Shown in pieces: positions 16,950 through 64,000 of a DNA stretch of 64,000 nt. Each line of letters begins with the position of its first letter. Position 1 is the first letter of the stretch. The stretch lies in the sequence record NC_047880.1; one strand, 5' to 3'. A program made the position numbers and the translations under genes. The notes below the pieces were generated by a model. It did no database searches. It was not told the DNA's origin and saw nothing but the letters and a program-made list of their open reading frames with translations.

Positions 16950-17214
16950 CTCTGTCCTCTAAAACGAATTGTAGTATACCCTCTACATTTACAGCCTTTA
17001 ATCTCTTCGAGGTAGGCATAAGCATACCGTTGAGAAGGCCAAGCAAGTCTGCACTGTGGCAGTCAGGTGCAATCTGGTGAACGTAGATATCTTCGGGAAT
17101 ATCCTGAGGGTTAAGCTGCCAAGCAGTACGCAAGGCAGCACCCATGAAAGCAGGACGTTCCACCAAATGTCTGTTCAAGAAAGAACAAATGTCTTCGGCG
17201 GTTAGTGCTGTCAT
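16927..17214 (-). CDS. Conserved phage hypothetical protein
   Basis: ORF between the polymerase and clamp genes; LLGLLNG motif. Confidence 0.65.
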   Translation of the reverse strand: MTALTAEDICSFLNRHLVERPAFMGAALRTAWQLNPQDIPEDIYVHQIAPDCHSADLLGLLNGMLMPTSKRLKAVNVEGILQFVLEDRDEDLPTA

Positions 17215-20200
17215 TTCTTCGTTATACCCTTCAACGCTGATTTAAGAAGCTTACTGCTGATTTTGATTTTCTTCTTAGCACCATCAACAGAAGCCGCTGC
17301 TTTCTTCGCTGCTTCTTCTGCTTCGTACTTCTCAAACATTTTTGTGTTCTTCGGCAATTCTTTCTGCCAAAGCTCGATGTTCTTTTTGTCTTTGTTGGTT
17401 AGCGGATTCACTTTAGACATTGAACGGATCTTAATGTTGTTTGCCCAAAGTTGTTTCTGCATCCAGTCAGACATGAGGTGATACTGATCTTCCATAATGC
17501 TATCAGTTGTCGCCTCTACATCGAGGTCAGGTTCATTCAGTTCATCACGCTTGATGATCAGACCATTCGTAATCAGCTTGCGTAAGTTTGTGAATGAGAA
17601 GTCCCAACCTTTAACGTCTTTCTCGGTAGCACCGATTTCGAAGTCGATTTCAGGTACGGAAGTAAATTCAAATCCAGGATGACGTTGCTGTACGACTTCG
17701 ACCACTGCGCTTGTCATGGCTCGTTCGATCATATCGAGTGCGAGGAATATCCACTTGTAGTCACAGTCAACGGTCAAGGAGTCATGTACAGATACGTTCA
17801 TATCGAAGTCAGGATATTCTCCATGCGACTTCCAGTATTCATATTTCATTCGGTCGAGAATACGAATCGCGGACATCATCAAGTCTGAACCGAAGCCCTG
17901 CACTGGACTGTTTACCGCACGTCTATCACACGCAGCATGAACGATGTTCGATTCTTTGTGCGACTCAGGAAGCATGAAGCCCCACAAGTGACGACGACGA
18001 CCAACTGGTGATTCAACGAAAAAGTTCTCATGAGCAAACTTCTTAATCTTATCAAACCATTTCAATCCGATAGGGAATCTGTCGAGGAACTTACTCTTGA
18101 TCTCGACGATCTCTTTCACATCACGACCAGTAGACTTCGCAAGACCTTTATCACCCTGCTGATAAATCAAGCCGAAGATAACTGTCTTAACCGCGTTACG
18201 AATCGCTTTCGTAACTTCCATCACAGGGATACCGAAGAAGTATGCGGCGTTAATCTTATGCACGTCCCCTTCGACTTCTACCAAGTGACTAATCCATGGA
18301 TCTGGAACAGTACGATAACGATGGCGAAGTTTACGACCTTGTTCGAATACGTCAGCAACGCCTTGGTCACCTGAGATGATAGACCAGCCCCTTACTTCGT
18401 GGGCTGAGTAGTCGACCTTGATAAGTAAACGGTTCTTACGCGAGATAAGAATACGCTTGATCAACTTACCCATCTCACTACGACTCGGCACCTGCTGTAA
18501 GTTCGGGTCAGATGCAGATGTACGACCTGTCACAACTTTCAGATAGCTGTACGTTGGTCGAATCGATCTGTCGTGTCTAAAGTCATCGGATGTTCCCCAC
18601 AACTTCAACAGGCTGTTAACGTAGGCGTTCTTGAGTTTGTACGCTTTACCCAGCTTCGTGTACAGTGCAACAATCGTAACGTCTGCATACGCTGCTTGGA
18701 AGTCTTTGTCGAGCTTACCAGCTTTCTTACCGTTCTCACGTACTTGGCTGTCGCTCTCTTTAAGAGGCTTGAGCTTCATCACGTCAAAGAACAGGACTTG
18801 CTTGTGCTCGGACTTGGACATATCAAACTTCGTTACTTCGACAGCGCCCATAAGACCCATCTTAGGAACATTGTCGTCAACGCAGATTGCTTTGTTTGCA
18901 GCGCGTACCTCAGGACTCGACATGAACTCACGCTCAACGTTTCGAATCTCTTCATTGATTGGACTGTTAGGCAAGTTCAGCTTAAACAGGTAATCAATGT
19001 CAGCGCCAGCACCTGTTACTTCCAGAATACTAAACGCATGGATCTGGTCAGAGATTTGTTCACGCACCATCGACTCATACTTCTTGTACTTAATGTCTCT
19101 GGCTCGTTGAATCTGTTTCTCTGTAATACGGAATGGAATGATAACGTCGAGGCCAGCATATTCCTGCACGTTTTCATCAAGTTCAACGTCAGCAATGGTT
19201 GCTCGCATCTCTTTACCGAACGACACTTCGTGATAGACAGTACACCCGTACTGCATCGTGAGGTTCGCTAAGTTGTAATAACCTTGACCGGTAACAGACA
19301 GCAGGGACTTGGCGTTTTCGTCAAAGGCAAACTCACCTGCTTGAATATCCCACACGTCGGCAGCATAACTACGAATGCCGAAGTTAGATCGCATAACGTT
19401 CAGGTCGAACTTCGCGTTTGTATAGATCTGATAATCGTTTTCGTTCTCTTCGAAGTAGTCACGAAACATCTCTTTGATCTTGCGCAGTTCTTTCGGGCTG
19501 AACGGACTGTCCTTGTGATACACAGGAATCACATACGCTTTCTTGCCATCGTCCGATAACTGCACCGTCAAGATTTTATTCTTGATACGATTCAGGTTCT
19601 CGGTTTCTGTATCGACTGCAACCTTCTTGGCGCGCTTCATACGCTTCAAGATCTTTTCGAGTTGCTTGACCTTCGTTACATACACGAGGTCCCAGTTACG
19701 CTTCTTACCACACGTCACTGTGTCGATCTTATACTTCATCCCCTTGTTGAGCCAAGGCAACATCCAACGACTCATATAACCAATCGTATACGATGATGCA
19801 CTGATAAGGCCAGGGTTCAGTACGATGTTATAGCTAACGTTAGGCAAGTGGATGAAGCTGTGCTTACGACCATCTGCTTTTACTTTAGTTGGAATCTCAA
19901 CACCGTACCAGTGTTCATAGTGCTCTTTCGAGAACTGAATCTTTTCGTTGTTCAAGGCTTTGAACGGAGCCTTACCAAAAGTCAGAACATAGTCTGGCTT
20001 ATAGTCAACGATGATTCCTTTCAGACGTTCTGCAAATGCTGCGTCTGCATCGTCTTTATACTGCTCGGTCTTCTCATACGTCTTAAACATGTTGTATGAA
20101 ATAACCAAGAAGTTCCAATCATCCAGAGTAGTCTTGGTGCGAAATACATCTTCAAGATACTGAACCTGATTCAGGAATAACTCACCCTCAGTCGAACTGA

Positions 20201-20375
20201 ATATCTTACCGTTACGCAAGTCATCAGAAGGCATATGGTCGAGGACGATTAGTGCTTTACCGCCTTTGGCACTCGTACTGATGCCTTTAAGAATTCGAAC
20301 GCCATCATACGTCTGCACGTCTGCAAACTGTTTGGGAGGGTCGAAGTCGATAGCTATGTGCTTGGTCTTCACCAT
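17211..20375 (-). CDS. polA: Family-A DNA polymerase with an N-terminal UDG-like domain and a 3'-5' exonuclease
   Basis: ExoI VDTETE, ExoII NAKFD, ExoIII YAGLD; TGRTSASDPNLQQVP, motif A VDYSAHEVR, motif B RNAVKTVIFGLIY, motif C VSVHDSL. Confidence 0.95.
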   Translation of the reverse strand: MVKTKHIAIDFDPPKQFADVQTYDGVRILKGISTSAKGGKALIVLDHMPSDDLRNGKIFSSTEGELFLNQVQYLEDVFRTKTTLDDWNFLVISYNMFKTYEKTEQYKDDADAAFAERLKGIIVDYKPDYVLTFGKAPFKALNNEKIQFSKEHYEHWYGVEIPTKVKADGRKHSFIHLPNVSYNIVLNPGLISASSYTIGYMSRWMLPWLNKGMKYKIDTVTCGKKRNWDLVYVTKVKQLEKILKRMKRAKKVAVDTETENLNRIKNKILTVQLSDDGKKAYVIPVYHKDSPFSPKELRKIKEMFRDYFEENENDYQIYTNAKFDLNVMRSNFGIRSYAADVWDIQAGEFAFDENAKSLLSVTGQGYYNLANLTMQYGCTVYHEVSFGKEMRATIADVELDENVQEYAGLDVIIPFRITEKQIQRARDIKYKKYESMVREQISDQIHAFSILEVTGAGADIDYLFKLNLPNSPINEEIRNVEREFMSSPEVRAANKAICVDDNVPKMGLMGAVEVTKFDMSKSEHKQVLFFDVMKLKPLKESDSQVRENGKKAGKLDKDFQAAYADVTIVALYTKLGKAYKLKNAYVNSLLKLWGTSDDFRHDRSIRPTYSYLKVVTGRTSASDPNLQQVPSRSEMGKLIKRILISRKNRLLIKVDYSAHEVRGWSIISGDQGVADVFEQGRKLRHRYRTVPDPWISHLVEVEGDVHKINAAYFFGIPVMEVTKAIRNAVKTVIFGLIYQQGDKGLAKSTGRDVKEIVEIKSKFLDRFPIGLKWFDKIKKFAHENFFVESPVGRRRHLWGFMLPESHKESNIVHAACDRRAVNSPVQGFGSDLMMSAIRILDRMKYEYWKSHGEYPDFDMNVSVHDSLTVDCDYKWIFLALDMIERAMTSAVVEVVQQRHPGFEFTSVPEIDFEIGATEKDVKGWDFSFTNLRKLITNGLIIKRDELNEPDLDVEATTDSIMEDQYHLMSDWMQKQLWANNIKIRSMSKVNPLTNKDKKNIELWQKELPKNTKMFEKYEAEEAAKKAAASVDGAKKKIKISSKLLKSALKGITKK

Positions 20376-22283: not shown

Positions 22284-25200
22284 TTATACCGACTTGTTCT
22301 TAGAAGCAGTCAGTTTCAACTTGTCGAGCGACTGGATGCACTTCTTCAAGTTCGTGATAGTGTAACCTGCTTTCACGATCTTGTTGATGCGAGCCTTAGC
22401 ACCAGAGACGTTTTTCACGAAACCAATCCACATGCCGGTAGCAATATCAAACGTACCGAACTTACGAGTGTTCGGAACTTTGGTGCCAACGAAACGTTTC
22501 ATTTTCGGGTTCGTGTTCAGGTCGAACATGATGCGCAGACGATCTTCCATCACCATCGGATATGCCTTGACGTGTTGCTTGTCGTTAGCAGTCTTGTGGC
22601 GTACAAGGAAGAACTGTTTCAACTGCGATTGCAGCTTAACAGCCAGCTTGTAGTTGAAGCTCAGACGCGGTGTTGATTCGTCGAAACTGTCCATGATGAA
22701 CTCAAGACGTTTAGCCGATGCGTTATCGAATTCCAATTTCTTGGAGTAGATGAAGTCCATCATCTTTTCGAAGTCCGCATAGTAAGCACAGTCGAAGTAG
22801 ACGTAATCACCAAACTCGGTGAAGTCGAAGTCTTTCAGTGCTTTCGCGTCAGGGTCTGTCGCGTCTGCATACAGCGCTACGAAGCCGTTGTATACGGTAG
22901 GCGTCAGGTCCATTGCCATGTCAGTACCGCTATCATCAAGAGCAATGATGCTGGCACCAGGCTTGGCTTTACGCACAGTGTTCGGCAGTGGAGGCAATTC
23001 AGATGCACGGCGACGGCGTACTTTGCCCGCTGCTTCCTGAACACCTTCATTAACAGGCTTACCTGCTGCTACGTTCTCACGGCGCTTCTTAACGCGAACG
23101 GTCTTGCGTTCCTGAATCTCAACCTTCTCTTCTGTAGCGCGAGTGTCAGCAGTCTGTGATTCATCGGCGATGGTGTCTTCGACTTCAACACGACTTGCTT
23201 CCGCTTCGGCACGTTTGCGATCTTGAGCAGTAGCCCAAGGCTTACGCACAGAGAAGAACTTCTTGAGATCTGCTTTGCCCACAGCAGTAGCAACGTGGAC
23301 TTTGTTTGCAGGAACAGTAACGAGATCTTCTGTACCAGACAAACGCACACGCACTGTGGTGATAGGCGAGTCAGCACGGAGTTTACCGTCAACAACACGA
23401 GCAGTAACACCGACAATCAGACCATTACCGAATTCAGTAACGACAGGCATCTTGTCCATCGCTGCTTTCATCATCGGACCGTCCGCGAAGTTCTGGTTAC
23501 GTGCCCAATCCAGCAGACGCTGTAAGCCCCAGCCATGACGGTCTGGAATCTTCTGGTTTGCTACGACAGGCGCTTGCTCCAGTACGCGGAAGTTTTTCAG
23601 AGGCGGTGTTTCAGGCAGAGGCATCATTGCTGCAACTGTCGTTGTACGCATCTCGTGGAACTCTTGCGATTCGATATCGTTCAGGTCTTTCTTCGCACGG
23701 AAGTATTCGATGAAGTCTTCCATCGTGTTGTTATCGATCAACAACTTCGCGCTCATTTTGATCGGGTCAAGCTTGTATTCGTCCAGCTTGTCGTACTTAG
23801 GATTACCCTTTTCATCGAAGCGGGTTTTCTCAAGCGTCTTCCACATCAGACGAGCAACCTTACCAACTTCTAAGGTCTTGTTCGTCATCACCCAGTCAAT
23901 GAATACGACTTCACGAGGCATATCACCAGGCTTACCGTTTTCATCAAGTTGCGCAGCAGAAACATCAGGACGGAAGATACGAGCAGTAGACTGATCGTAA
24001 GTACCTGGTGACCACGGTGTATCACAGCGGATAATACGACTACCCATCTGCATGTTGTGGCCTTCACTGATAGCCTGTTCGTTCGCAATCAGAATCTGAA
24101 CAGCGTTGTCAGTTTTGAATGCGTCGAGGTTAGCGTCTTTGCTCTGGCCGAGCTTACCGACTTCGCCGTGATAGAGAGCAGCAATTTTCTTGTAGTTCTC
24201 TGGCAGTGCGTTGTAGATAGCGTTAGCAGCACGAACATAGCGAGTGAAGACAATCAGCTTACCTTGTGTTTCAGGCTTCCAGTAATCTGGATCATCACTT
24301 GGTGGAACGTTGGACGGCGGCAGATACTGACGTTTGAACGCATCGGTCTGCTTACGCGCAAGATACTTCTGACCTTGATAGACAGCAATATCCAGCTCAC
24401 GAGGTTCTACGCCCGGACGCCATTCGAAGATCTGTTGGTCAGACTGATTGTTTGGATCAGTATCACGCTCAGGCTGTACTTCGAAGTGTTTCTTAATACG
24501 GTTGATGATAGCGACAACTTTCGCACTGACAAAGTTAGTCACACCAGCATCTTCAAACGTCAGGCGCGCTACGTCATCACCCATTGGGTCAGTCAGTAAC
24601 ATTTCCATACGCTGGAAGTACATGTTCAGGTCAGCGTTACCTGCGAGCAGCGCACCGAGATCATCACCTTCTTCAATCTCAGATACGTCGATGCCGCTTT
24701 CTTCATCTGGACCATCTGCATCACCACCGTCATCTTCGTCGTCTTCCATCGCACGTCTACGCGCTTTAGCCGAGTTAGATGCCTCTTGCAGTTTCTCCAA
24801 CACTTGAGAGTACATCGCTTGATATACTTCCATGTGCAAGTTGGAGTTAGGCACAGATGGATCATCAATCTCTACCTGAATGAAGGTGTCGATTGGGTTA
24901 GGCAGCATGAACGCCCAGTGCTTACGCTTGAACTGAATGAACGCTGTGTGGTTTGCCATACGTGAGTGAGCACGACGAATCATTTCGATATCGTCTTTCG
25001 CACCGTCATACGCTACGTCGAGTGAGTCACCGAACATAGCAGGTGTCATCAACGCGGCTTGACCAACAATGTCACGCACACGGTCTGTTACCAACGTACC
25101 AGTAGCGATACGCGCATAACGAACAGAAGGCGCAGTGAATACCGCTTTCGTGTTGAAGTGCACCTGACTACCAGACTGACCACCGCTGTAGTTCTTAACT

Positions 25201-53940: not shown

Positions 53941-54513
53941 TTAAGACCTCAAATCAATCAGGATAGAAGCACTGAGATCACGAAGCATACTGCGACCCAG
54001 TGATGTATACATAACCTGAGAAACAACAATGCGTTCGAGGAACAGACGCGAGCTTTCAACATCGTGCCCTGTCTTACCGCGAACATATTCGATTATAGAG
54101 GAAGGTGGCTGTATGAGGAAGGTAAGTATTTCTGCATCATGCAAAACAGAACCCATGTCAGTGACAGGGCGCATCTCTGTTTCCTGATCAAGGATGTACG
54201 CGAGCACACGCTCACCGTTACCTGTGATTGGATTCTGCTTGAAGAAAGAACGAGTAACGTCCACAGTGTGTTTAAAGTTGTAGTCGCTACTCGTTGGAAG
54301 ACGCAAGAAAAGTGAAGCAAGTAAAAGGTTAATATCGACCTGAGGGCCGCTTTCAATATTGAGCATCGCGTGAGAAGTGAGAACAACATTGAGAGCGAAG
54401 TCCCTAGTGTACAGTGTATGCGCAGCCGCGTGTCTGTCATAAAAGTCAAGGGCTTTCCGTAACCCTTGATTCATTAACAGATGTTCTGCTTTTATGCGGG
54501 CGAGGCGCTGCAC
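53941..54513 (-). CDS. Degenerate HD-domain-like helical protein
   Basis: LLLASLFLRL at the AALLHD position, LHDAEIL at the DAD.L position. Confidence 0.4.
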   Translation of the reverse strand: MQRLARIKAEHLLMNQGLRKALDFYDRHAAAHTLYTRDFALNVVLTSHAMLNIESGPQVDINLLLASLFLRLPTSSDYNFKHTVDVTRSFFKQNPITGNGERVLAYILDQETEMRPVTDMGSVLHDAEILTFLIQPPSSIIEYVRGKTGHDVESSRLFLERIVVSQVMYTSLGRSMLRDLSASILIDLRS

Positions 54514-54514
54514 T

Positions 54515-55486
54515 TTAGTTTTCCCCGCGGATTTCTTTAAGCGAGTTCTTCATCGCTTTGCGCAGAGACTTACCAACATCAATACCGTCGATGTGCTTCG
54601 CAAACACATGGGCGAACAATGTTGTTGGATTTTTCATTACTGCTTTGTCGAGATCAGGACGGCCACCAGCAATCTGAATCTCTCCAGGCCACAGGTCTGC
54701 AATAGCGGCAGAGTCCTGTCCTGCAATCAGTTCGAGTTCACGCACACTGATTGAGTTCTGACGTGCGATAGTACGGAAGATGATATCGACGAAAGGCAGA
54801 AGGTCTTCGGACACAACGTTCTTCACGTCTTTAGCATCACCAGCACGTTGGAAATCTTCCATCAGTTCTGTCAGAGTTTTCTGATCGATCTTCTGAACGT
54901 TGCGCAGTTTCTTGAACATCACCATCCAGCGAACTTTACGCTTAGAACTTACGAGGTGAGTCCAGACGCTTTCGCCTAATGCAAGGAGTAGACGATTATA
55001 AACATCCACACTAACGCAATCACGATCAACGAACACAGAGACTTCATCATGCCATTCATCCTTACGGAACTTACTTCGGAATGAATGCGTCTTCGAGCCT
55101 GACTGCTGAATGAAATTGATAGACGCCATACGTCTTACAGCTTCACGCAGTTTGTACTTGTCGATCAGCTTAGGAAGTTTCTTCACGCCGATCATACAGG
55201 CTTTACGAACTTCCGATTCACGTCCGTACAGATGCAACGCAGGCATATCAGAAATAGCAGGTAGGCCTACGTGCGGACGAACAGTAACACCAAACACAGA
55301 ACTGCCTGGCTCAGGGTCATCACCTAGAACACACAGCAAGTCAGTGCTTGGCAGGAATTTAATCACGACGGGTTCTGGCAGATGCAGCGAGTTAGCAGCA
55401 AGGCCAACTGTTTTACCTGTCGCTAGAACCAGAAGATTTTTATTACCCTGCCTTACGACAACATAATCTTTTTCACGATGTTTCAT
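54515..55486 (-). CDS. Hypothetical protein with a degenerate zincin-like segment
   Basis: LALGESVWTH at the HExGH position, LFAHVFAKH at the E.FAE.F position. Confidence 0.5.
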   Translation of the reverse strand: MKHREKDYVVVRQGNKNLLVLATGKTVGLAANSLHLPEPVVIKFLPSTDLLCVLGDDPEPGSSVFGVTVRPHVGLPAISDMPALHLYGRESEVRKACMIGVKKLPKLIDKYKLREAVRRMASINFIQQSGSKTHSFRSKFRKDEWHDEVSVFVDRDCVSVDVYNRLLLALGESVWTHLVSSKRKVRWMVMFKKLRNVQKIDQKTLTELMEDFQRAGDAKDVKNVVSEDLLPFVDIIFRTIARQNSISVRELELIAGQDSAAIADLWPGEIQIAGGRPDLDKAVMKNPTTLFAHVFAKHIDGIDVGKSLRKAMKNSLKEIRGEN

Positions 55487-55494
55487 AACGGCCT

Positions 55495-55971
55495 TTAGAT
55501 TTGAGTTTCAGAAGAAAGAAGTCCGTGAGTCATACCAGCAGCAGGATGCCACTTGGTAGTTACGTTGAGGAGAGCTTGCTCTTCCCACGCATCATTGTCT
55601 TCAAGTTGTTCGCAGATCAGAGCGAGCGCCATGTTCTCGTCTTTGCCTAAGTGCGCGAAGTCAGCAACAACGATCTTAGGCTTAGACAGGTCTGCGATCT
55701 CTTCGAGACAGTATTGCAGTTCTTGCAGCGAGTTAACGGCATACGAACTGCAATCCATCAGACCAGCATATTCAGTTGGTCCAAAGTGAGTGATCGCAAA
55801 GTCAGGCGCGATATCATGCAAGCACAGGAAGTGCATCAGGTCAGTGGCAATCGACGGCTGAACTTGCATGTTAAGTACCGCGATTGAGCACGGTACGTCT
55901 GATACGATTTGAAGATCACATGATGTTCCAGCAAGGTCTTTGACGATGCTGTGTGCGAGAAGGTTGCTCAT
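55495..55971 (-). CDS. Hypothetical protein
   Basis: RBS GAGG; operon context. Confidence 0.7.
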   Translation of the reverse strand: MSNLLAHSIVKDLAGTSCDLQIVSDVPCSIAVLNMQVQPSIATDLMHFLCLHDIAPDFAITHFGPTEYAGLMDCSSYAVNSLQELQYCLEEIADLSKPKIVVADFAHLGKDENMALALICEQLEDNDAWEEQALLNVTTKWHPAAGMTHGLLSSETQI

Positions 55972-55982
55972 GGTGAAGCCCT

Positions 55983-56207
55983 CTATTTCTCTTCTGTTGG
56001 GTAGGATACAGGACTAGAAGTCTTGTAGAAGTTAAAGTCCGTGTTGAAACGAACAGAGGCGCGAGACACTTCTGTTTGTGCCCGCACCGACTTCTGCTGT
56101 TTGCGTTTGTTGAGAGACTCACGACGATCGAGGTCGTCAAAGATACCAGACCGTCTGTGGTACTTGAACTTCGGATGCACTGAAATATCTTTGACGATAG
56201 CGGTCAT
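55983..56207 (-). CDS. Small basic hypothetical protein
   Basis: Start moved to MTAIVK (RBS AGAGG) to remove overlap. Confidence 0.6.
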   Translation of the reverse strand: MTAIVKDISVHPKFKYHRRSGIFDDLDRRESLNKRKQQKSVRAQTEVSRASVRFNTDFNFYKTSSPVSYPTEEK

Positions 56208-56211
56208 ACGT

Positions 56212-56709
56212 TTACCTCTTAGCTTTTTCAACCCGTTTACAATACTCGTTCCATTTTTTAATACAGAACTCATAAAAAGTTAAAGTATCAACTCGACCTG
56301 CGTAACGTTTATGCCATGAGCCTACATGATGACGACAACAGCTTTTTCCGTATAAACAACAGATCAAATGACCAAGTCCCCACATGATAGGAAAATTAGT
56401 CTTACGAATAATACGAGCAAGCTCCTGCGCAACATTGTCCCAATCAAAATCTTTGAACAACGTATCCAATTGTTTTTCGATCTGACCAATCTTTTTGTGG
56501 TCGAATTGATCTAGTATTGGATCCAATTTCTTGTCAGACCATCCGTATATCCAGTGCGAAGATGGTTTGTGCCCTTTATACGCAGTAGGCGTTTGATACT
56601 TAATAGCATCAATAACCAGAGCCTCTTCAAAAATTGTTAGGATTTGTCGCTTGGTCGTATATAAAGGTTCGTCTCTTTTTATAGGCCTCTTTCTCTGTAC
56701 TCTTGCCAT
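56212..56709 (-). CDS. Hypothetical protein (AT-rich gene)
   Basis: RBS AAGGAG; variant promoter CTGTAAACT upstream. Confidence 0.7.
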   Translation of the reverse strand: MARVQRKRPIKRDEPLYTTKRQILTIFEEALVIDAIKYQTPTAYKGHKPSSHWIYGWSDKKLDPILDQFDHKKIGQIEKQLDTLFKDFDWDNVAQELARIIRKTNFPIMWGLGHLICCLYGKSCCRHHVGSWHKRYAGRVDTLTFYEFCIKKWNEYCKRVEKAKR

Positions 56710-56754
56710 ACACAGAAACTCCTTGTGAAGAATGTATGCAGTCAGTTTACAGAA

Positions 56755-57279
56755 TCAATCTTCTACGCCGCGAATGCGCTCAAGCTCATACGCAAGATAG
56801 TCTTCCCACGAATAGAAACCATCTTTAGCAATAACTGGATCGTGCTGCCCACCAATCTTCGTACCTTTAGGGAAACGAATTTTGTTAGACAGTCTCTGCA
56901 ACTTATCGTACATGTAGGTTGTATGTCGAACGAGCAAGTTAGGTGCAGGCAAATGCTTCTGCAAAAACTTGCAACTTACCATTAAAGGGAAGTCTTTCAA
57001 CAATTCAACTGAGTCGCGTTGTTTCTCCGCGCGCACGATCACCTGATCAACTTTAGCCTTATACTCAACATTCGAGTAGTACCATTCATCAAGCGAATCA
57101 AGACCGTGCTGTTCTTCATATACCATGGCTTCATACATGGACATAAGAACAGGCTTCCCCTCCTTCTTGTCCTTGTACGCCAGTAACATGTCGGCATAAG
57201 AGCCGAACTTTACTTCCATGAATACTTCAAGGATTGAGGCGTAACGAAGAACTTCAAATTCAGTAAGTACCTTACCCAT
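56755..57279 (-). CDS. Hypothetical protein
   Basis: RBS GGAG; operon context. Confidence 0.7.
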   Translation of the reverse strand: MGKVLTEFEVLRYASILEVFMEVKFGSYADMLLAYKDKKEGKPVLMSMYEAMVYEEQHGLDSLDEWYYSNVEYKAKVDQVIVRAEKQRDSVELLKDFPLMVSCKFLQKHLPAPNLLVRHTTYMYDKLQRLSNKIRFPKGTKIGGQHDPVIAKDGFYSWEDYLAYELERIRGVED

Positions 57280-57282
57280 ACT

Positions 57283-58899
57283 TTACTCCGGGAATATTTC
57301 TTTTTCAGAAAATCTTTTAGCAACGAACAGAGCATCACTGCTGTTCACCACATCACCATCAACAAGCATCAGAGCACCGTCATGCTCAAGCGAGTAGAAG
57401 CCTTTAACGTTCGGACAATTTAAAATTGCATCGAACAAAAACTTACTCTCCCAACCAGCTAACATATGGTTGAGAACACGGCGACTGATTTTCTTACGCT
57501 TCTCGTCAGGCTCAGGGTCGTAGCGCGATCCTGTAGCACAAGTGAGAACCCCGTATTCTTGCCTGTTTGCTTTCGCGTTCTTCCTGAACTTCTGTTGGTA
57601 CACATCGAGTAATTCATTGATGCCGTAGTACAGAAGTGTAACGCGCGTATTCCAGTCAACAATTTTATTGCGGACCTCTCGCTTCGGAAGTATCTTAGCA
57701 TATTCCTTATATGCGTTACTGTAGGGACCAGTCTCTAACTGACCTGCAGAAAATATCGTTGAGTACAATAGGACCTTGGCTATGGGCTTATCGATCTGAA
57801 AAACCCGAGCAACGTCTTCGACAGATTGAAACTCGTTGAAGAATCCTAAATCAATACCGTTGAACTCAAACTCTTTGCGGAGCACATTGAACTGACTGGA
57901 CTTCATATCCCAGTTGGTTCCGACTGTGTAGCACTTCTGTTTGAGACTGCTTGGTAAGTTTTGGAATCCACCACCCTCTTCGAACAAACGACCACCGAGT
58001 TTCGATAGACGGTACTTAGCCCAATAGCGAATTACGAGAGGACTCTCGCTAACAATTTGCACAGGCCCGCCAACGATAGTGTCGAGTAGAGTTTTAACCT
58101 GTAGGTATTGCTTCTTCGCCTTACGATTAGCGATCAAAGATCTATCTTCCAAATAAGCAAGTATAGGTTCGATGTTCACTTCGTTCGGCAATTGTTTTTC
58201 TAACACAGCACGATAAAGCGCACGGCCAGTTAAAGTTTTACCGTTACCCCTGTCGCGATTCCTGTCAAGAGTTGACAGATCGTGAGAAGGTTTAGTGAAA
58301 GGGCGCTTAGAATTCTTTTGAATCTGGGACCAGACTGTTATGCCGTAGTCTTCACGGGGAATCTTTAGCGGGCTATAGAATCGGATGCGATGCAAGATAT
58401 CGTCGGATGTGTGTGGTTTAAAGTGCCCGTACATTCCGTCTAAGATTTCTTGACGCATTCTGAACTCTCTGCACCTCCCCTTTGCTTTATCGTAAGGCTT
58501 AGTCTCAAGGACGTTTACTTTTAGCCAATCTAAGGAACGTTCGAAAGTCCCTCTCTTCGATACAGCATATTTACCGACTGCAACAGAATCTCCGCCCCTG
58601 CGATAGCCAAATACCATCGGAAGCTTGTCTTGACCCAATTCTTTCGGAAATGGCACCCAAACACGTCCAAATTTCTTTTTCTTGTCTTTTCGCGCAGGAT
58701 ATAGGCTACACTGCAAAATATGCCAGAAGAATAAGTTCAATTGAGTACGGAACTCGTGTTCACCGCTAGGCGGACCCTCATAGGGGCAAGCGAAAATCAC
58801 GTTGTCTCGAACCCAAATAACGACTTCTTTCTCCTGGTAAACGGGGCTTGTGATCAGAACAGGCCCCTGGCCAGAAACGATTCGTTTTTTCATGTTCAC
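57283..58899 (-). CDS. Divergent family-A/TV-Pol-like polymerase-domain protein
   Basis: GGRLF...FQNLPSSLK, WDMKSSQFNVL (motif A), AKVLLYSTIF (motif B), LAGWES, SLEHDGALM (motif C). Confidence 0.65.
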   Translation of the reverse strand: MNMKKRIVSGQGPVLITSPVYQEKEVVIWVRDNVIFACPYEGPPSGEHEFRTQLNLFFWHILQCSLYPARKDKKKKFGRVWVPFPKELGQDKLPMVFGYRRGGDSVAVGKYAVSKRGTFERSLDWLKVNVLETKPYDKAKGRCREFRMRQEILDGMYGHFKPHTSDDILHRIRFYSPLKIPREDYGITVWSQIQKNSKRPFTKPSHDLSTLDRNRDRGNGKTLTGRALYRAVLEKQLPNEVNIEPILAYLEDRSLIANRKAKKQYLQVKTLLDTIVGGPVQIVSESPLVIRYWAKYRLSKLGGRLFEEGGGFQNLPSSLKQKCYTVGTNWDMKSSQFNVLRKEFEFNGIDLGFFNEFQSVEDVARVFQIDKPIAKVLLYSTIFSAGQLETGPYSNAYKEYAKILPKREVRNKIVDWNTRVTLLYYGINELLDVYQQKFRKNAKANRQEYGVLTCATGSRYDPEPDEKRKKISRRVLNHMLAGWESKFLFDAILNCPNVKGFYSLEHDGALMLVDGDVVNSSDALFVAKRFSEKEIFPE

Positions 58900-58919
58900 A
58901 TCGTGTTTACCTGATTTTC

Positions 58920-59280
58920 TATCAGCTATTTACAGATATAGAACCCAAAGCTATTCAAGGCTATACAAGATAGATCATCATAGGAAGGATAGCTACAGCG
59001 GTACAGCTATACAGCTCATAGATAGCTACGATTGTTATTGCTGGTACACATCTTTAGGCGGCACGTTTTTCAAAGAGCGAAAATGAGAAAACGATACCAA
59101 TACCTGCCCAAAGCATACCAACTAACAGCCCAGCAGAGCATTCTAGCCGACAAACCTAGGTCGTCTAAACCGTGTAAATAATTTCTAAAAAGGGAGCAGT
59201 TTTCTGAAAAAACACCGCAATTTAGAGAAAAATGAGGGCAAAACCGAATAAAATCAAAGGTTTAACCCTCGTTCGACAGA
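58920..59280. other. Long intergenic region with short GCTA/TAGC repeats and an A-rich tract (candidate origin)
   Basis: No convincing gene; 6-7 [AG]GCTA units in 58923-59030; orphan plus-strand TGTAAATA at 59173. Confidence 0.35.
58927..58935 (-). promoter_or_regulatory. Class-B motif CTGTAAATA
   Basis: Before the TV-Pol-like gene. Confidence 0.7.
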
Positions 59281-59287
59281 AATCAGA

Positions 59288-59944
59288 TCACTTTTTCTGA
59301 GAAACGCGCTGTCCTAATTTGACGCCGATGCTCGTCATAATACGTTTCACTGTTTCGCCGTCATGTTCTTCAATTGCTTGCGCAAGCCGTTCGCCCTGAT
59401 CACGCGATAGCTCAGGCATAACCATTTTAAGCATAGTAGAACGCAGTTTGGCGCTCTTGCTGCGCTTTTTCGACAGCGAAGTCGTTTCCATCTCCTGTGC
59501 TACTCGGCTCATTGTACGCTGGACGCGACGATCAGCGAAGATATCACCAAAGATATCGCCGAATAAGTCTTTGAACGACATACCTCCGCCCATTACATCG
59601 TCCTTTGTGAAACGAACAGGCTGTCCGAGCGCATTAGTTTTAGCGCAATGTGTAGATTCGACAGCGTTTTGAATGCGATCGCCCGTGCGCGTTACTTCGT
59701 CAGGACGTGACGGCTTGCCCTCTGCTCCAGGATTCGTATCACCGTTACGCAGCGCAGGGTCACCTTCAACTTGTTTGTTTTGATCAAACATGTCATCGGC
59801 TGTAGCGCTTTGATTCGGGTCAAACGGAATCTTGCCTGTAAGCTTGTTAGGGTCAGGATACGAACGAGGGATATCAGACGCCGGTTGAGGCATGTTCGTC
59901 ATATCGCCGTTCTTTTCGCTATTCAAACTAATCATTACTCGCAT
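59288..59944 (-). CDS. Putative head-associated protein with an MRVMISLNS tag
   Basis: Start moved to ATG 59944 (RBS AAGGA); N-terminus fits the tag family. Confidence 0.65.
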   Translation of the reverse strand: MRVMISLNSEKNGDMTNMPQPASDIPRSYPDPNKLTGKIPFDPNQSATADDMFDQNKQVEGDPALRNGDTNPGAEGKPSRPDEVTRTGDRIQNAVESTHCAKTNALGQPVRFTKDDVMGGGMSFKDLFGDIFGDIFADRRVQRTMSRVAQEMETTSLSKKRSKSAKLRSTMLKMVMPELSRDQGERLAQAIEEHDGETVKRIMTSIGVKLGQRVSQKK

Positions 59945-59954
59945 TTTTCGTTCC

Positions 59955-61064
59955 TTATCGAATTTTATAGCCTTTGAAAATGTTGTACGCAACTTCTTTG
60001 CGCTGTACAGGACGAGTGACGCACACCCATTCCCATTGATCGTTCTTCGCCGTACGCTTCTTAGGTGCTTCCATAACTTTCAGCACGTAGTTTTTGAAGG
60101 GCAGCACTAAGAAGTCTTCAGGTTCAATAGCGCCGCTACGCGCAGGCAGAACAACCGTGATGTTACCGACGGTCAGCTCCTGTTCGTAGTTCAACACGTT
60201 TGCTTCGTCGCTGATGTTGCCGTTAACAGGCGGTACACCCAAGTCGAAGATCATCGCAACGTGCGTGAAAGACTCAACATTACGGATTCGTAGTGTTACG
60301 TGCTGCCCGCGAAAACGGTCCATGTTTGCGGCTGTCAATTCGACCTCTACGCCGTTCAGGAGCAGCATAGGGCGGGGAAAAGCGGGCAATAATCTTTCGT
60401 TCTCACGAATAGAATAAGTCGCCTGCGTAAAGTATTTTGGAATAAGCTGATCGAAATCTGCGTGTGCGTCTTTGCGTTGCTGTCTAAACGTGGACGGACT
60501 TGTTGATTGATCCAACGTATAGCCAGACAGCTCTTTGACGTGATGGTGCGTGACGATGTTATAGATATAGCCTGTTGCTGCGAAGCCGGGAACAATACCC
60601 TGACGGAAACAAATGCCGCAGTTCGCAACGTTACCTGCATCACCTCTGACGTCAAACTCTTCGTCAGTGCCTGTACCCATAATGTCTGCTGCATCCATTG
60701 CTGCATCCATGCCGTCGTCAATATCATCGAACGCAACAGTCTGGCGACCGCCACCAAACATTGTCTTTGATACAGTACCGAGTTTAACTCCACCAGCTAC
60801 TTCGTTGGAGCTACGACCAAGACCCTTCAATGGACCTTCTTGATCATCGAATTCATCGTTCTCAACCTTGTTACAACTACAGGTGATACCCATCTTCGCT
60901 TTCTTGAAGATGACTACCTGCGTTGAATCGACAGCAAGCGCCTGTTCAACTTTGGACTGCACCACTTCTTGGATGCTGTCTAAACGTTGTTGCACTCGTT
61001 CTGTTTCGTAGGTCTTATGACGGTTGTAACGGTTGGTGGGTTTACCACGTTCAATCCAGCTCAT
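59955..61064 (-). CDS. Putative neck/head-completion protein
   Basis: K....CSC...CGICFRQG pattern as in myovirus neck proteins; late CTAATTTT motif; RBS GAGGAG. Confidence 0.5.
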   Translation of the reverse strand: MSWIERGKPTNRYNRHKTYETERVQQRLDSIQEVVQSKVEQALAVDSTQVVIFKKAKMGITCSCNKVENDEFDDQEGPLKGLGRSSNEVAGGVKLGTVSKTMFGGGRQTVAFDDIDDGMDAAMDAADIMGTGTDEEFDVRGDAGNVANCGICFRQGIVPGFAATGYIYNIVTHHHVKELSGYTLDQSTSPSTFRQQRKDAHADFDQLIPKYFTQATYSIRENERLLPAFPRPMLLLNGVEVELTAANMDRFRGQHVTLRIRNVESFTHVAMIFDLGVPPVNGNISDEANVLNYEQELTVGNITVVLPARSGAIEPEDFLVLPFKNYVLKVMEAPKKRTAKNDQWEWVCVTRPVQRKEVAYNIFKGYKIR

Positions 61065-62129: not shown

Positions 62130-62816
62130 TTGGGAAAATCTGTAATGGCGAAGCTAAAGAAAGAACGAAAAGCTGAGACTAAAAAAGTCGCTGCGAAGAA
62201 AACAAATAAACGGAAAGCAATTCCAGTAACAGTAATTGCAGATACGCGCCCTATCATCGTATGCCCTGAACTCGAAGAGACTGCACAGCCTTTCCGATTC
62301 AGAGGCCAATGTCCGATGGTCACTTGTCAGTATTGCACAAGAGAGACTACGACAGGCTGCATGGCTCTTGACAGAAAAGAATCCGCTGATCGTTCTATCT
62401 CTAACAGGGAGATTGCTTATTACAAGCGTGGCCTCTTTCCTGAACTTAAAGAAATGGACCAAAAGCAATTGGACACGACAGTCCGTCGCGCACAAGCTCG
62501 TACCCGTACTGCTCTCTGTCTTAATATGTACATTGCTTCCATTGATGATTCTGATTGCGACCGTACTTTCTCCTTTGTAGAAGGCCGCTCACGAATCGTT
62601 GATCAGGTTCATAACTATCTGGTTCAAACATTTACTGACTACCGACCGTGGATGCTCGCGTATCTCGATGATGAAGAACGCTTCAACACGTCAGTGGGCA
62701 AAGTAACCAATTCCGAATTCAATTTAGGTTACGCACTGCGCTTAACGCCTCGTAAGTATCAGACGTTCTGCCAGTCGCTGAAAGACCTCAAACAATCTGG
62801 AGAAAGACATGAGTAA
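62130..62816 (+). CDS. Cys-rich hypothetical protein (possible Zn-binding)
   Basis: CP...CPMVTCQYC...GC; CTGTAAATA motif upstream; start probably MAKLKK. Confidence 0.7.
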   Translation: MGKSVMAKLKKERKAETKKVAAKKTNKRKAIPVTVIADTRPIIVCPELEETAQPFRFRGQCPMVTCQYCTRETTTGCMALDRKESADRSISNREIAYYKRGLFPELKEMDQKQLDTTVRRAQARTRTALCLNMYIASIDDSDCDRTFSFVEGRSRIVDQVHNYLVQTFTDYRPWMLAYLDDEERFNTSVGKVTNSEFNLGYALRLTPRKYQTFCQSLKDLKQSGERHE

Positions 62817-64000
62817 CTTTATTTCGTTGGATCAGTATCGTGCTATCATCCAACGCAACATTCTCGTCGAGCCTGCAATGCTTGTCTCGAACCAAACGCA
62901 GCCACTGGGTTCTATCACCTTCCAGTGTCCTGGCGACAACTTCCAGATGCGGGATATCACAATCCCTGCTTCGCGTAACGCAGTCGACCTGACTCAATAT
63001 GCACCTCTGGAAAATTTACTTGCGTGTTCTCAACTGAAATCTCTAATTCAGTTGCAGCGCATCGCGTTGTTGAATCCGGAAGACATGCCAACTCCTGGTG
63101 AAGGTATTCAGAAGCCTACGCTTTCTGTTGAACCTGTTGCTGGCGCTATGTCAGTTGATGGCCAGACTATCCCGAATGCAACGATCATCGTTGAGCAGAA
63201 CGGAAACGTTTGGACTGGTACTTCGAACGGTGCTGGTGTATTCACTGTTGACGTTAGCGGACTTGAAGAAGGTTCGTTCTCAATCACAGTGACCGCAGAA
63301 GGCTTCACGCCAGCTCGCTTCACTTACGAAGCAGGTGAACAGCCTCTTCAACCGTACCCAGTTCCTACTGCGACTGCTGTGTTTAAAGAAACCACAGTCA
63401 ACGGTACGACTGTTCCTCTTGCGAACATTGTCGTTGCGTTCGACACTAAATCGTTTACCGGTCAAGCAGATGATCAAGGCGTGTTCGCCATTGATGTTGA
63501 CCCAATTCCGTTTGATGCAATCAGCCTGCACTTCGAAGCTGAGGGCTATTTGGAATACAACACAACGATCAACGCTGCAAGCATTCCTGGTATCGCGTCT
63601 GTTACTGCGCTGAACTTCCTGACAACTAGCGTTGCAGGTACTGCGAGTCCGAACGCAGAAGTTGAGATCTTGATTGATGGCCAGCCGAACGTGTTTGCTA
63701 CTGCAAGCCCGACTGGTGCATGGTCTGCTACAGTGTTGCCTGTTAAAGGCACTGTGCTTGCGCGTAGTCTTGAAGTTGATGGCTATGATGAAGCAACGGC
63801 AACTGCCGTACCTTCTAAATTGAACTTCGGTGACGTTGTTGTTGATGACGCTGATCAATTCGGTGAGAACCGTACAACTGTGACTGGTACAATCGCAGGC
63901 TTGAGCCCTGATGCTACCGACATTGCTGTGACAGTTACTGTTCAGGCGGGTGTCTACGAAGGGACTGTTGACCTTGCTGCTGGCACGTTCAACATTACAG
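62809..64000 (+). CDS. Ig-like-repeat virion protein, truncated by the window edge (not in the ORF track)
   Basis: Manual translation MSNFISLDQYRAIIQRN...; repeated V.GTT.P.A.I.V.....G..D..G.F.I.V units; open to the window end. Confidence 0.75.
   Translation, partial: MSNFISLDQYRAIIQRNILVEPAMLVSNQTQPLGSITFQCPGDNFQMRDITIPASRNAVDLTQYAPLENLLACSQLKSLIQLQRIALLNPEDMPTPGEGIQKPTLSVEPVAGAMSVDGQTIPNATIIVEQNGNVWTGTSNGAGVFTVDVSGLEEGSFSITVTAEGFTPARFTYEAGEQPLQPYPVPTATAVFKETTVNGTTVPLANIVVAFDTKSFTGQADDQGVFAIDVDPIPFDAISLHFEAEGYLEYNTTINAASIPGIASVTALNFLTTSVAGTASPNAEVEILIDGQPNVFATASPTGAWSATVLPVKGTVLARSLEVDGYDEATATAVPSKLNFGDVVVDDADQFGENRTTVTGTIAGLSPDATDIAVTVTVQAGVYEGTVDLAAGTFNIT

Follow-up and report, generated by a model that had tools for sequence, protein, structure and literature searches.

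The 64,000-nucleotide stretch of NC_047880.1 studied here (the window) corresponds to approximately positions 124001-188000 of the 261,365 bp record of Erwinia phage vB_EamM_Y3 (Sasquatchvirus Y3). On its minus strand, at 57283-58899, it carries an open reading frame of 1617 nt which matches this phage at 100% and encodes gp219 (YP_009794393.1), a protein deposited as a 'hypothetical protein'. The frame comprises 538 aa followed by a stop codon and starts either with GTG at 58899 or with an in-frame ATG two codons on, at 58893. The protein is matched end to end by PHROG 30690 (E 1.4e-300), a family with no assigned function. Scans with Pfam, NCBIfam and PADLOC models gave no match for gp219 and nothing relevant for its neighbours or for 44 relatives, and no PDB sequence was matched by gp219 either as a single sequence or as a profile. 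The curated family-A model DNA_pol_A (PF00476), which is matched by Y3 gp173 at 2.7e-53, also left gp219 and the 44 relatives unmatched; for the distant branch this held up to E<=10. The evidence set out below nevertheless makes it very probable that gp219 is a TV-Pol, a polymerase of family-A type, with a catalytically competent active site.

The family was assembled from 17 close homologues and from 40 cluster representatives returned by an exhaustive search of 1.84 billion proteins; a further word-indexed search with the broad family profile (A2) added no members. The main alignment holds 44 sequences with a mean column identity of 16% and reaches relatives at approximately 20% identity, while a second profile (A1) is limited to the jumbo phages. 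One distant member, P0053, bears the UniRef name 'family A palm domain-containing protein', which was given independently of the present analysis.

An AlphaFold2 model of gp219 built from the 17-sequence alignment (mean pLDDT 81.3, pTM 0.70) was compared by Foldseek with 350,542 PDB chains. There were 36 matches at E<=1e-3, the best being to the Klenow fragment (5.7e-6), and all of them were family-A DNA polymerases (Klenow, M. smegmatis Pol1, Taq, Bst, apicoplast Pol, Pol theta, T7 DNA polymerase and DpoZ) with the exception of the last, T7 RNA polymerase; more RNA polymerase entries, from T7 and mitochondria, followed at E 5e-3 to 1e-2. In a viral structure library the orthologues of gp219 in Dickeya phages JA29, JA11 and JA13 and in Erwinia phage Yoloswag came out on top, and beyond these lay a Pyramimonas virus replication protein (1.1e-7), phage PolAs and the replication proteins of the virophage Zamilon (9.8e-6) and of a Qinghai Lake virophage (6.3e-4). 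At the level of profiles, the family matched residues 665-888 of E. coli Pol I at E 0.014 and Y3 gp173 at E 0.0089, and in hhalign A2 gave E 1.4e-4 against a PolA profile of three sequences, the alignment covering 202 columns and keeping every motif in register. The gp219 core scored E 0.003-0.012 against each of three single DNA polymerases and E 0.15 against T7 RNA polymerase. A sequence-only reading of the window had proposed that a second family-A-like polymerase is encoded here and had named a structural comparison with the palms of PolA and T7 RNA polymerase as the check; the Foldseek result supports the palm fold, and together with the PolA profile and the residue mapping it bears out that the fold is of family A and that motifs A, B and C follow one another as expected.

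All five motif strings quoted in that reading occur in the gp219 translation in the order given: GGRLFEEGGGFQNLPSSLK at residues 301-320, WDMKSSQ at 330-336, AKVLLYSTIF at 374-383, LAGWES at 480-485 and LEHDG at 504-508. Across the 44 sequences R304, Q313 and K375 are invariant, and conservation is at least 90% for Y292, Y296, G303, E307, G311, K320, N329, D331, Q336, G482, E484, H506, D507 and G508. Because these conserved columns coincide with the quoted strings, the motifs lie far beyond what a chance pattern would produce. Residue correspondences were set on the numbered reference sequences of E. coli Pol I, T7 DNA polymerase and T7 RNA polymerase. The segment R304-Q313 (57961-57990, minus strand, as are all the gp219 features that follow) comprises the predicted template-contacting Arg hairpin and the pre-motif A element; it reads GR-x8-QNLP and has the same R-to-Q spacing (GR-x8-QN[IL]P) as R668-Q677 of Pol I, with R304 sitting in the model in a hairpin of strands E296-298 and E305-307. 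Motif A (D331-MKSSQFN338; 57886-57909) holds the predicted first catalytic Asp, equivalent to Pol I D705, which by DSSP closes strand E328-332 ahead of a helix at 335-346. Since motif A has two extra residues after D331, either Q336 or N338 is a candidate for the steric-gate equivalent. In motif B, the O-helix (57751-57789), residues K371, K375, Y379 and F383 correspond to R754, K758, F762 and Y766 of Pol I. Motif 6 (57448-57483) comprises R473, N477, A481-G482 and E484, with R473, N477 and G482 at the positions of R841, N845 and G850 and A481-G482 at Q849-G850. Motif C (E505-H506-D507-G508; 57376-57387) holds the predicted second catalytic Asp, H506-D507 corresponding to H881-D882. The position of T7 RNA polymerase Y639 is occupied by F383 and is variable across the family. 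Because DNA polymerases outscore RNA polymerases by both profile and fold, and because the Y639 position is a variable Phe, DNA synthesis is most likely favoured over RNA synthesis.

The polymerase core spans residues 280-538 (57286-58062) and, as delimited by Foldseek, the PolA profile and the motifs, includes the beta-hairpin with R304, the palm and the fingers. It is preceded by a short helical segment, residues 226-279 (58063-58224; helices 226-234, 244-254 and 259-276 by DSSP), which is presumed to be a reduced thumb from its place ahead of the Arg hairpin. Residues 1-225 (58225-58899) form an N-terminal domain, delimited by hhalign and DSSP, which is mainly helical in the model and possibly includes a winged-helix element (helix 120-129, strands 131-134 and 145-148). 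This domain is common to the jumbo-phage proteins and to proteins from enterobacterial genomic islands (hhalign 99.5%, E 6.3e-23), and the family has therefore a fixed two-domain architecture. The absence of an exonuclease domain, which had also been claimed from the sequence, was confirmed: there is no Pfam exonuclease match, and when residues 1-225 were compared by hhalign with the 3'-5' exonuclease domains of Pol I, T7 gp5 and gp173, no similarity was seen (E 0.39). As no conserved acidic residues are present in the N-terminal region of gp219 either, a vestigial exonuclease in this half of the protein was ruled out.

With canonical PolA enzymes (Klenow, T7 gp5, gp173) gp219 shares the palm and fingers fold, the GR...QNIP element and motifs A, B, 6 and C, and with T7 DNA polymerase it has in common a Tyr at the B3 position. 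It differs from the canonical enzymes in lacking the 3'-5' exonuclease domain, in a core of about 260 instead of about 400 residues with a presumably reduced thumb, in the two extra motif A residues, which lie between the Asp and SQ, in having HDG instead of HDE, and in falling below every curated PolA model.

TV-Pols are defined by a bi-helical thumb, a hairpin bearing an Arg, a palm with two Asp residues and fingers with an RxxxK motif, and are without nuclease domains; in one subset the core is preceded by a further domain, TV-PolN, and the genes are associated with integrases, resolvases or transposases, and the Microcystis phage Ma-LMM01 has been named as the carrier of a TV-Pol in an integrated element (PMC2579912). 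The gp219 protein has the hairpin Arg in R304, which is invariant and aligned to Pol I R668, and the two palm Asp in D331 and D507, within the palm found by Foldseek. Helices 244-254 and 259-276, which come ahead of the hairpin in the model, would be the two-helix thumb. No nuclease domain is fused or linked to gp219, and TV-PolN is indicated by the N-domain common to the island proteins and by an alignment with Ma-LMM01 gp030. A tblastn search with P0050, a cyanobacterial member of the family, reached Ma-LMM01 at 23214-24056 (E 3e-4) and its MaMV relatives (9e-6), and in addition the Erwinia and Dickeya phages. Ma-LMM01 gp030 is a 'hypothetical' protein of 506 aa, the gene of which is adjoined by two transposase genes; it is almost certainly the published TV-Pol of this phage, with which it was equated via these transposase neighbours and not via an accession. 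In hhalign A2 matched gp030 with a probability of 99.0% and E 3.4e-18 over 407 columns, from the N-domain through motif C, and the alignment of the two proteins begins at residue 13 of gp219 and residue 18 of gp030; A1 matched at E 5.6e-5, and the PolA profile did not detect gp030 (E 0.075). Because the profile match to gp030 spans both the N-domain and the core, the assignment of gp219 as a TV-PolN plus TV-Pol protein is supported, given that gp030 is equated with the published TV-Pol by context. The TV-Pol type suggested by the sequence-only reading thus holds on three counts, the fold matches, the register of the PolA profile and the direct match to gp030.

Like gp219, the TV-Pols of TV-PolN type such as gp030 consist of an N-domain and a minimal family-A-type core with no nucleases; they share with the gp219 family the hairpin Arg, the two Asp and the O-helix Lys, and are likewise found in phages and in integrase, resolvase or transposase elements. 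In contrast to the TV-Pols of small elements, gp219 appears to be vertically inherited in a 261-kb phage with a full replisome and has no D5-type helicase or recombinase as a neighbour. Linkage to a D5-type helicase, integrase, resolvase or transposase was not found in Y3, where gp219 lies in the replication and recombination region of the jumbo phage; linkage to mobile elements is seen in its relatives, in the integrase/AlpA islands, in the neighbourhood of a resolvase and next to the Ma-LMM01 transposases. The TVpol-helicase proteins of virophages and polinton-like viruses (Sputnik V13 type) are among the best viral fold matches of gp219, but in these an N-terminal polymerase module is fused to a superfamily-3/D5 helicase whereas gp219 is a stand-alone protein with TV-PolN.

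A gene of the gp219 family is present in 41 deposited records of Erwinia, Dickeya and Yersinia jumbo phages belonging to the genera Sasquatchvirus, Alexandravirus and Salmondvirus. The locus is fixed, with a Holliday-junction resolvase gene, gp221- and gp220-like genes and a non-coding gap of 390-500 bp followed by the gp219 gene, which in Y3, Alexandra and JA11 is located upstream of the clamp loader and SbcC genes. The frame is open over its full length in every relative checked. In Dickeya phages JA11 (L030:8971-10635) and AD1 (L034:680-2317) the deposited proteins are truncated at the N-terminus (JA11_200, 405 aa, and AD1_214, 351 aa), but frames of approximately 540-550 aa are open and the conserved N-terminus is kept; the short coding sequences are start-site mis-calls and do not point to pseudogenes. 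In the tree both the jumbo-phage proteins and the enterobacterial island proteins are monophyletic (100/99 in each case), and Ma-LMM01 gp030 groups with cyanobacterial and deltaproteobacterial members, apart from the group of jumbo phages and islands. Because of this monophyly and the conserved synteny, the phylogeny points to a single acquisition by the ancestor of the Sasquatch-, Alexandra- and Salmondvirus phages followed by vertical descent. The two genes just downstream of gp219, gp218 and gp217, have no counterpart in Alexandra or JA11 and are thus not conserved with the polymerase gene, which rules them out as a partner in the style of CcPol-MP, and there is no helicase gene in the gp219 operon.

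Upstream of gp219 there is a 388-bp non-coding gap (58900-59287, minus strand), the place of which is conserved in Alexandra and JA11. It contains a terminator-like hairpin (59271-59255), sigma70-like -35/-10 elements (59169-59140) within a block that is conserved almost throughout, a second block without variation, and after these an array of GTAGCT/ATAGCT repeats on the sense strand (58924-59030). The 150 nt adjoining the start codon hold seven TAGCT/AGCTA and five ATAGCT sites, mostly on the sense strand, and the array is the densest spot of the window, in which the background is 1.17 per kb. The two blocks, CACGGTTTAG-CGACCTA with one variable position and the invariant GCCTAAAGATGT, recur together with the repeat-rich character in pEa_SNUABM_2, fHe-Yen9-02 and AD1. 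An established RNA element was rejected because the gap has no match in Rfam, and a repeated phage promoter was rejected because the conserved block occurs only once in the window. The gap may serve as leader, operator or origin.

Outside the phages, a six-sequence sub-alignment identified 20 chromosomal loci with a relative of gp219 in Klebsiella, Hafnia, Citrobacter, Proteus, Morganella, Pectobacterium, Serratia, Providencia, Gilliamella and others. The islands show a recurrent order of RadC/DUF2787 genes, integrase, AlpA, a protein of 340-417 aa, the polymerase gene and variable cargo, examples of which are type I restriction-modification systems and an AAA_15 ATPase; no primase genes were found in them. 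The partner gene directly upstream of the TV-Pol gene (L016:6475-7617, L012:6551-7576, L005:8462-9613 and seven more loci) encodes a protein with no match in Pfam, NCBIfam or PHROG. Its model (pLDDT 89.4) has the fold of a Rep_trans rolling-circle initiator, matching RepDE (4cwe; E 1.1e-8, TMt 0.68) and RepSTK1 (4cij; 2.6e-6), and Y216-x-K218 is invariant; we infer that Y216 is the active-site Tyr. On the strength of this model, the Rep_trans and TV-Pol pair would represent an unannotated replication module beside defence cargo. Between the Rep-like gene and the TV-Pol gene lies an AT-rich gap of approximately 380-400 bp (L016:7618-7997, L012:7577-7979, L005:9614-10000, and also at L010, L014 and L015) with a semi-conserved block (...CTATATGGCTATAGTATGGGG...), which is a candidate origin or nick site. 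Long non-coding stretches precede the TV-Pol gene in two metagenomic contigs as well. A homologue of the island Rep_trans protein was not found in Y3 by hmmsearch of all open reading frames of the window and its flanks, and the island protein is unrelated to gp221 and to the gene upstream of the Desulfamplus family member.

Other members of the family are located in comparable surroundings: that of Desulfamplus is placed after ERF, YqaJ and SSB genes, one on a large-phage contig adjoins FEN and DHH genes, and a further one has a serine resolvase and ArdC close by. What these loci have in common is the polymerase gene, and its neighbours are replication and recombination genes of mobile elements, a context which favours a role in starting the replication of such elements. 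In Budvicia (L017) there are two tandem paralogues of the TV-Pol gene, encoding 465 and 483 aa. Some island copies are decaying, since the gene is split in Kluyvera (L023; 251 + 274 aa) and in Providencia (L024) only short fragments are left.

The role of gp219 has to be seen against the replication genes of Y3. The main PolA, which the sequence-only reading had placed beside this second polymerase, is indeed a separate protein, gp173 (17211-20375, minus strand), with a 3'-5' exonuclease domain (PF01612 and PF00476) and with VHDS at motif C instead of the usual VHDE; gp209 is a clamp loader, and gp227, with a DnaG Zn-ribbon and a Toprim domain, is a DnaG-type primase. These three proteins already cover polymerisation with proofreading, priming and clamp loading, which makes gp219 an accessory enzyme, and the presumed short thumb of the model together with the lack of proofreading would argue against bulk synthesis. 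Taking all of the observations together, the explanation which we regard as reasonably likely is that gp219 is a competent TV-Pol acting as an accessory enzyme of low processivity in the initiation or restart of replication; a function specifically in initiation or priming, which the sequence-only reading had also suggested, is put forward more tentatively, as a possibility somewhat short of an even chance. In this mechanism a minimal family-A-type core (Arg hairpin, palm, fingers and a presumed short thumb) joined to TV-PolN, without proofreading or 5'-nuclease domain, would catalyse a two-metal reaction at D331 and D507, in which R304 would contact the template and K375 and Y379 the incoming nucleotide. 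The product would most likely be DNA rather than RNA, and the enzyme would most likely start or restart DNA synthesis with low processivity, either as a primase-polymerase that makes primers de novo or by elongating the 3' ends available at nicks or D-loops, before handing over to the proofreading PolA gp173 and its clamp loader. We infer both of these activities, and place initiation or restart, possibly with priming, slightly above primer-dependent extension.

The nearest characterised system is CcPol of SCCmec. It was placed among the TV-Pols by Iyer et al. and is, like gp219, an exonuclease-deficient A-family polymerase, with a short thumb which gp219 presumably shares; it is encoded by mobile elements, and it is the only case shown experimentally to be a dNTP-using primase. 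To our knowledge this one atypical and partner-dependent member is the only TV-Pol to have been assayed so far. TV-Pols were predicted in 2008 to combine primase and polymerase activity (PMC2579912), and CcPol-MP uses dNTPs to make DNA primers, but CcPol alone merely extends primers and requires the OB-fold partner MP for priming (PMC7581432). The PolA-SSB primases are of this CcPol-MP type (PMC10061031); they have an adjacent gene for a small OB-fold SSB and a helicase gene, of which the gp219 locus has no conserved counterpart.

Several points count against the proposed role in initiation or restart. The partner dependence of CcPol is one of them, as comparison of Y3 with Alexandra and JA11 shows no conserved partner next to gp219; because no conserved neighbour could act as MP, either TV-PolN supplies an MP-like function or gp219 is primer-dependent. 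A second primase is on the face of it superfluous in a phage with the DnaG-type primase gp227, and in the islands a 3'-OH would come from the Rep_trans nickase, a circumstance in favour of primer dependence in that setting. Between Y3 and Alexandra gp219 is only 43% identical, in contrast to 75-77% for gp214, gp220 and gp221 (window 53941-61064). With regard to the active site, the third carboxylate of motif C (Pol I E883) is Gly in gp219. In RxxxK the invariant residue is K375, while four residues before it Y3 has K371, most jumbo-phage members have Lys or Arg and the rest of the family varies, so that the first residue of this motif is not conserved family-wide.

In the most probable of the alternatives, which we still consider rather unlikely, gp219 would be a strictly primer-dependent DNA polymerase incapable of priming and serving in gap filling, lesion bypass or strand-displacement extension from nicks or recombination intermediates during recombination-dependent replication or repair. 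In its favour are the primer dependence of CcPol without MP (PMC7581432), the lack of a conserved partner beside gp219, the DnaG of Y3 and, in the islands, the upstream nickase that makes the 3'-OH; moreover gp219 is flanked by the Holliday-junction resolvase gene on one side and by those for the clamp loader and SbcC on the other, and lacks proofreading, like many bypass polymerases. On the other side, the islands encode no primase and rolling-circle elements still require priming of the lagging strand, TV-Pols of other elements replace primase domains ahead of D5-type helicases (PMC2579912), and by analogy with MP the N-domain of the family could serve in the binding of single-stranded DNA or of a specific site. 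If that last idea is carried further, TV-PolN plus TV-Pol proteins would be self-sufficient, site-specific primase-polymerases in which the N-domain acts as MP or SSB, with the GTAGCT repeat gap in cis, or the AT-rich block in the islands, as the target, and the gap would mark a replication origin in the jumbo phages. This version is improbable; if it were true, gp219 would be an initiator polymerase and would represent a third kind of origin priming, besides DnaG and AEP primases, in a phage which has DnaG.

The remaining explanations survive less well. The more rapid divergence of gp219 relative to its flanking genes could point to a conflict-related role, i.e., an enzyme captured from satellites or islands which interferes with these or makes DNA that counters host defence, and the closest non-phage relatives do reside in integrase/AlpA islands with restriction-modification and AAA_15 cargo. 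We judge this very unlikely given that there is no PADLOC match, that the catalytic motifs show strict conservation, with an intact gene throughout the relatives examined, and that this gene occupies a stable syntenic place in the replication and recombination region in three genera. A T7-like single-subunit RNA polymerase transcribing part of the phage genome would fit the weaker fold matches, which include T7 and mitochondrial RNA polymerases (E 1e-3 to 1e-2), the HDG of motif C, which like the HDS of T7 RNA polymerase is without Glu, and the fact that a multisubunit phage RNA polymerase was not annotated in the stretches inspected. It is highly improbable, however, as DNA polymerases are better matches by fold (5.7e-6 versus 1e-3) and by profile (0.003-0.012 versus 0.15), the Y639 position is Phe and varies, the 538-aa protein has no promoter-recognition modules, the Y3 sigma factor gp241 implies use of the host RNA polymerase, and HDS is found in the DNA polymerase gp173 of Y3 as well. 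That gp219 is a decayed, catalytically dead relic with a structural or binding role, as the lost third carboxylate (G508), the Ala or Ser at the Q849 position of the jumbo-phage clade, where distant family members retain the canonical IQG, and the missing Pfam DNA_pol_A match might suggest, is barely credible since little or no variation is seen at the metal-binding Asp pair, the template Arg and the O-helix Lys down to approximately 20% identity, and the third carboxylate is likewise missing both from gp173 (VHDS), which is certainly active, and from T7 RNA polymerase (IHDS).

As a kind of enzyme, a TV-Pol of TV-PolN type has already been described; the novelty appears to lie in the occurrence of a conserved TV-Pol in jumbo phages of one lineage, in the inclusion of PHROG 30690 in the family and in the Rep_trans and TV-Pol module of the islands. 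The gp219 gene is not discussed in papers on these phages, an overview of jumbo phages, which counts five types of DNA polymerase, makes no mention of TV-Pol (Iyer et al., 2021; PMC7824862), and a 2023 reclassification of family-A polymerases has no cluster of the gp219 type (PMC10201439). The assignment provides a function-level annotation for PHROG 30690 and for the 'hypothetical' genes in the 41 records of Erwinia, Dickeya and Yersinia phages, and it indicates that a lineage of jumbo phages with a complete replisome still keeps an enzyme of this family, whose members, according to a 2008 prediction, are similar to the ancestor of Pol I and of the T7-type RNA polymerases (PMC2579912). It also uncovers, across the Enterobacterales, a putative module of a Rep_trans initiator and a TV-Pol in integrase/AlpA islands with defence cargo. 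Both Y3 gp219 and the island pair are tractable, in standard laboratory hosts, for a direct test of whether a TV-Pol of TV-PolN type primes alone.

A minor observation concerns the far end of the window, where gp225 (62809-64000, plus strand) is named 'inverse autotransporter beta-barrel domain-containing protein', an odd annotation for a phage which appears in JA11 as well.

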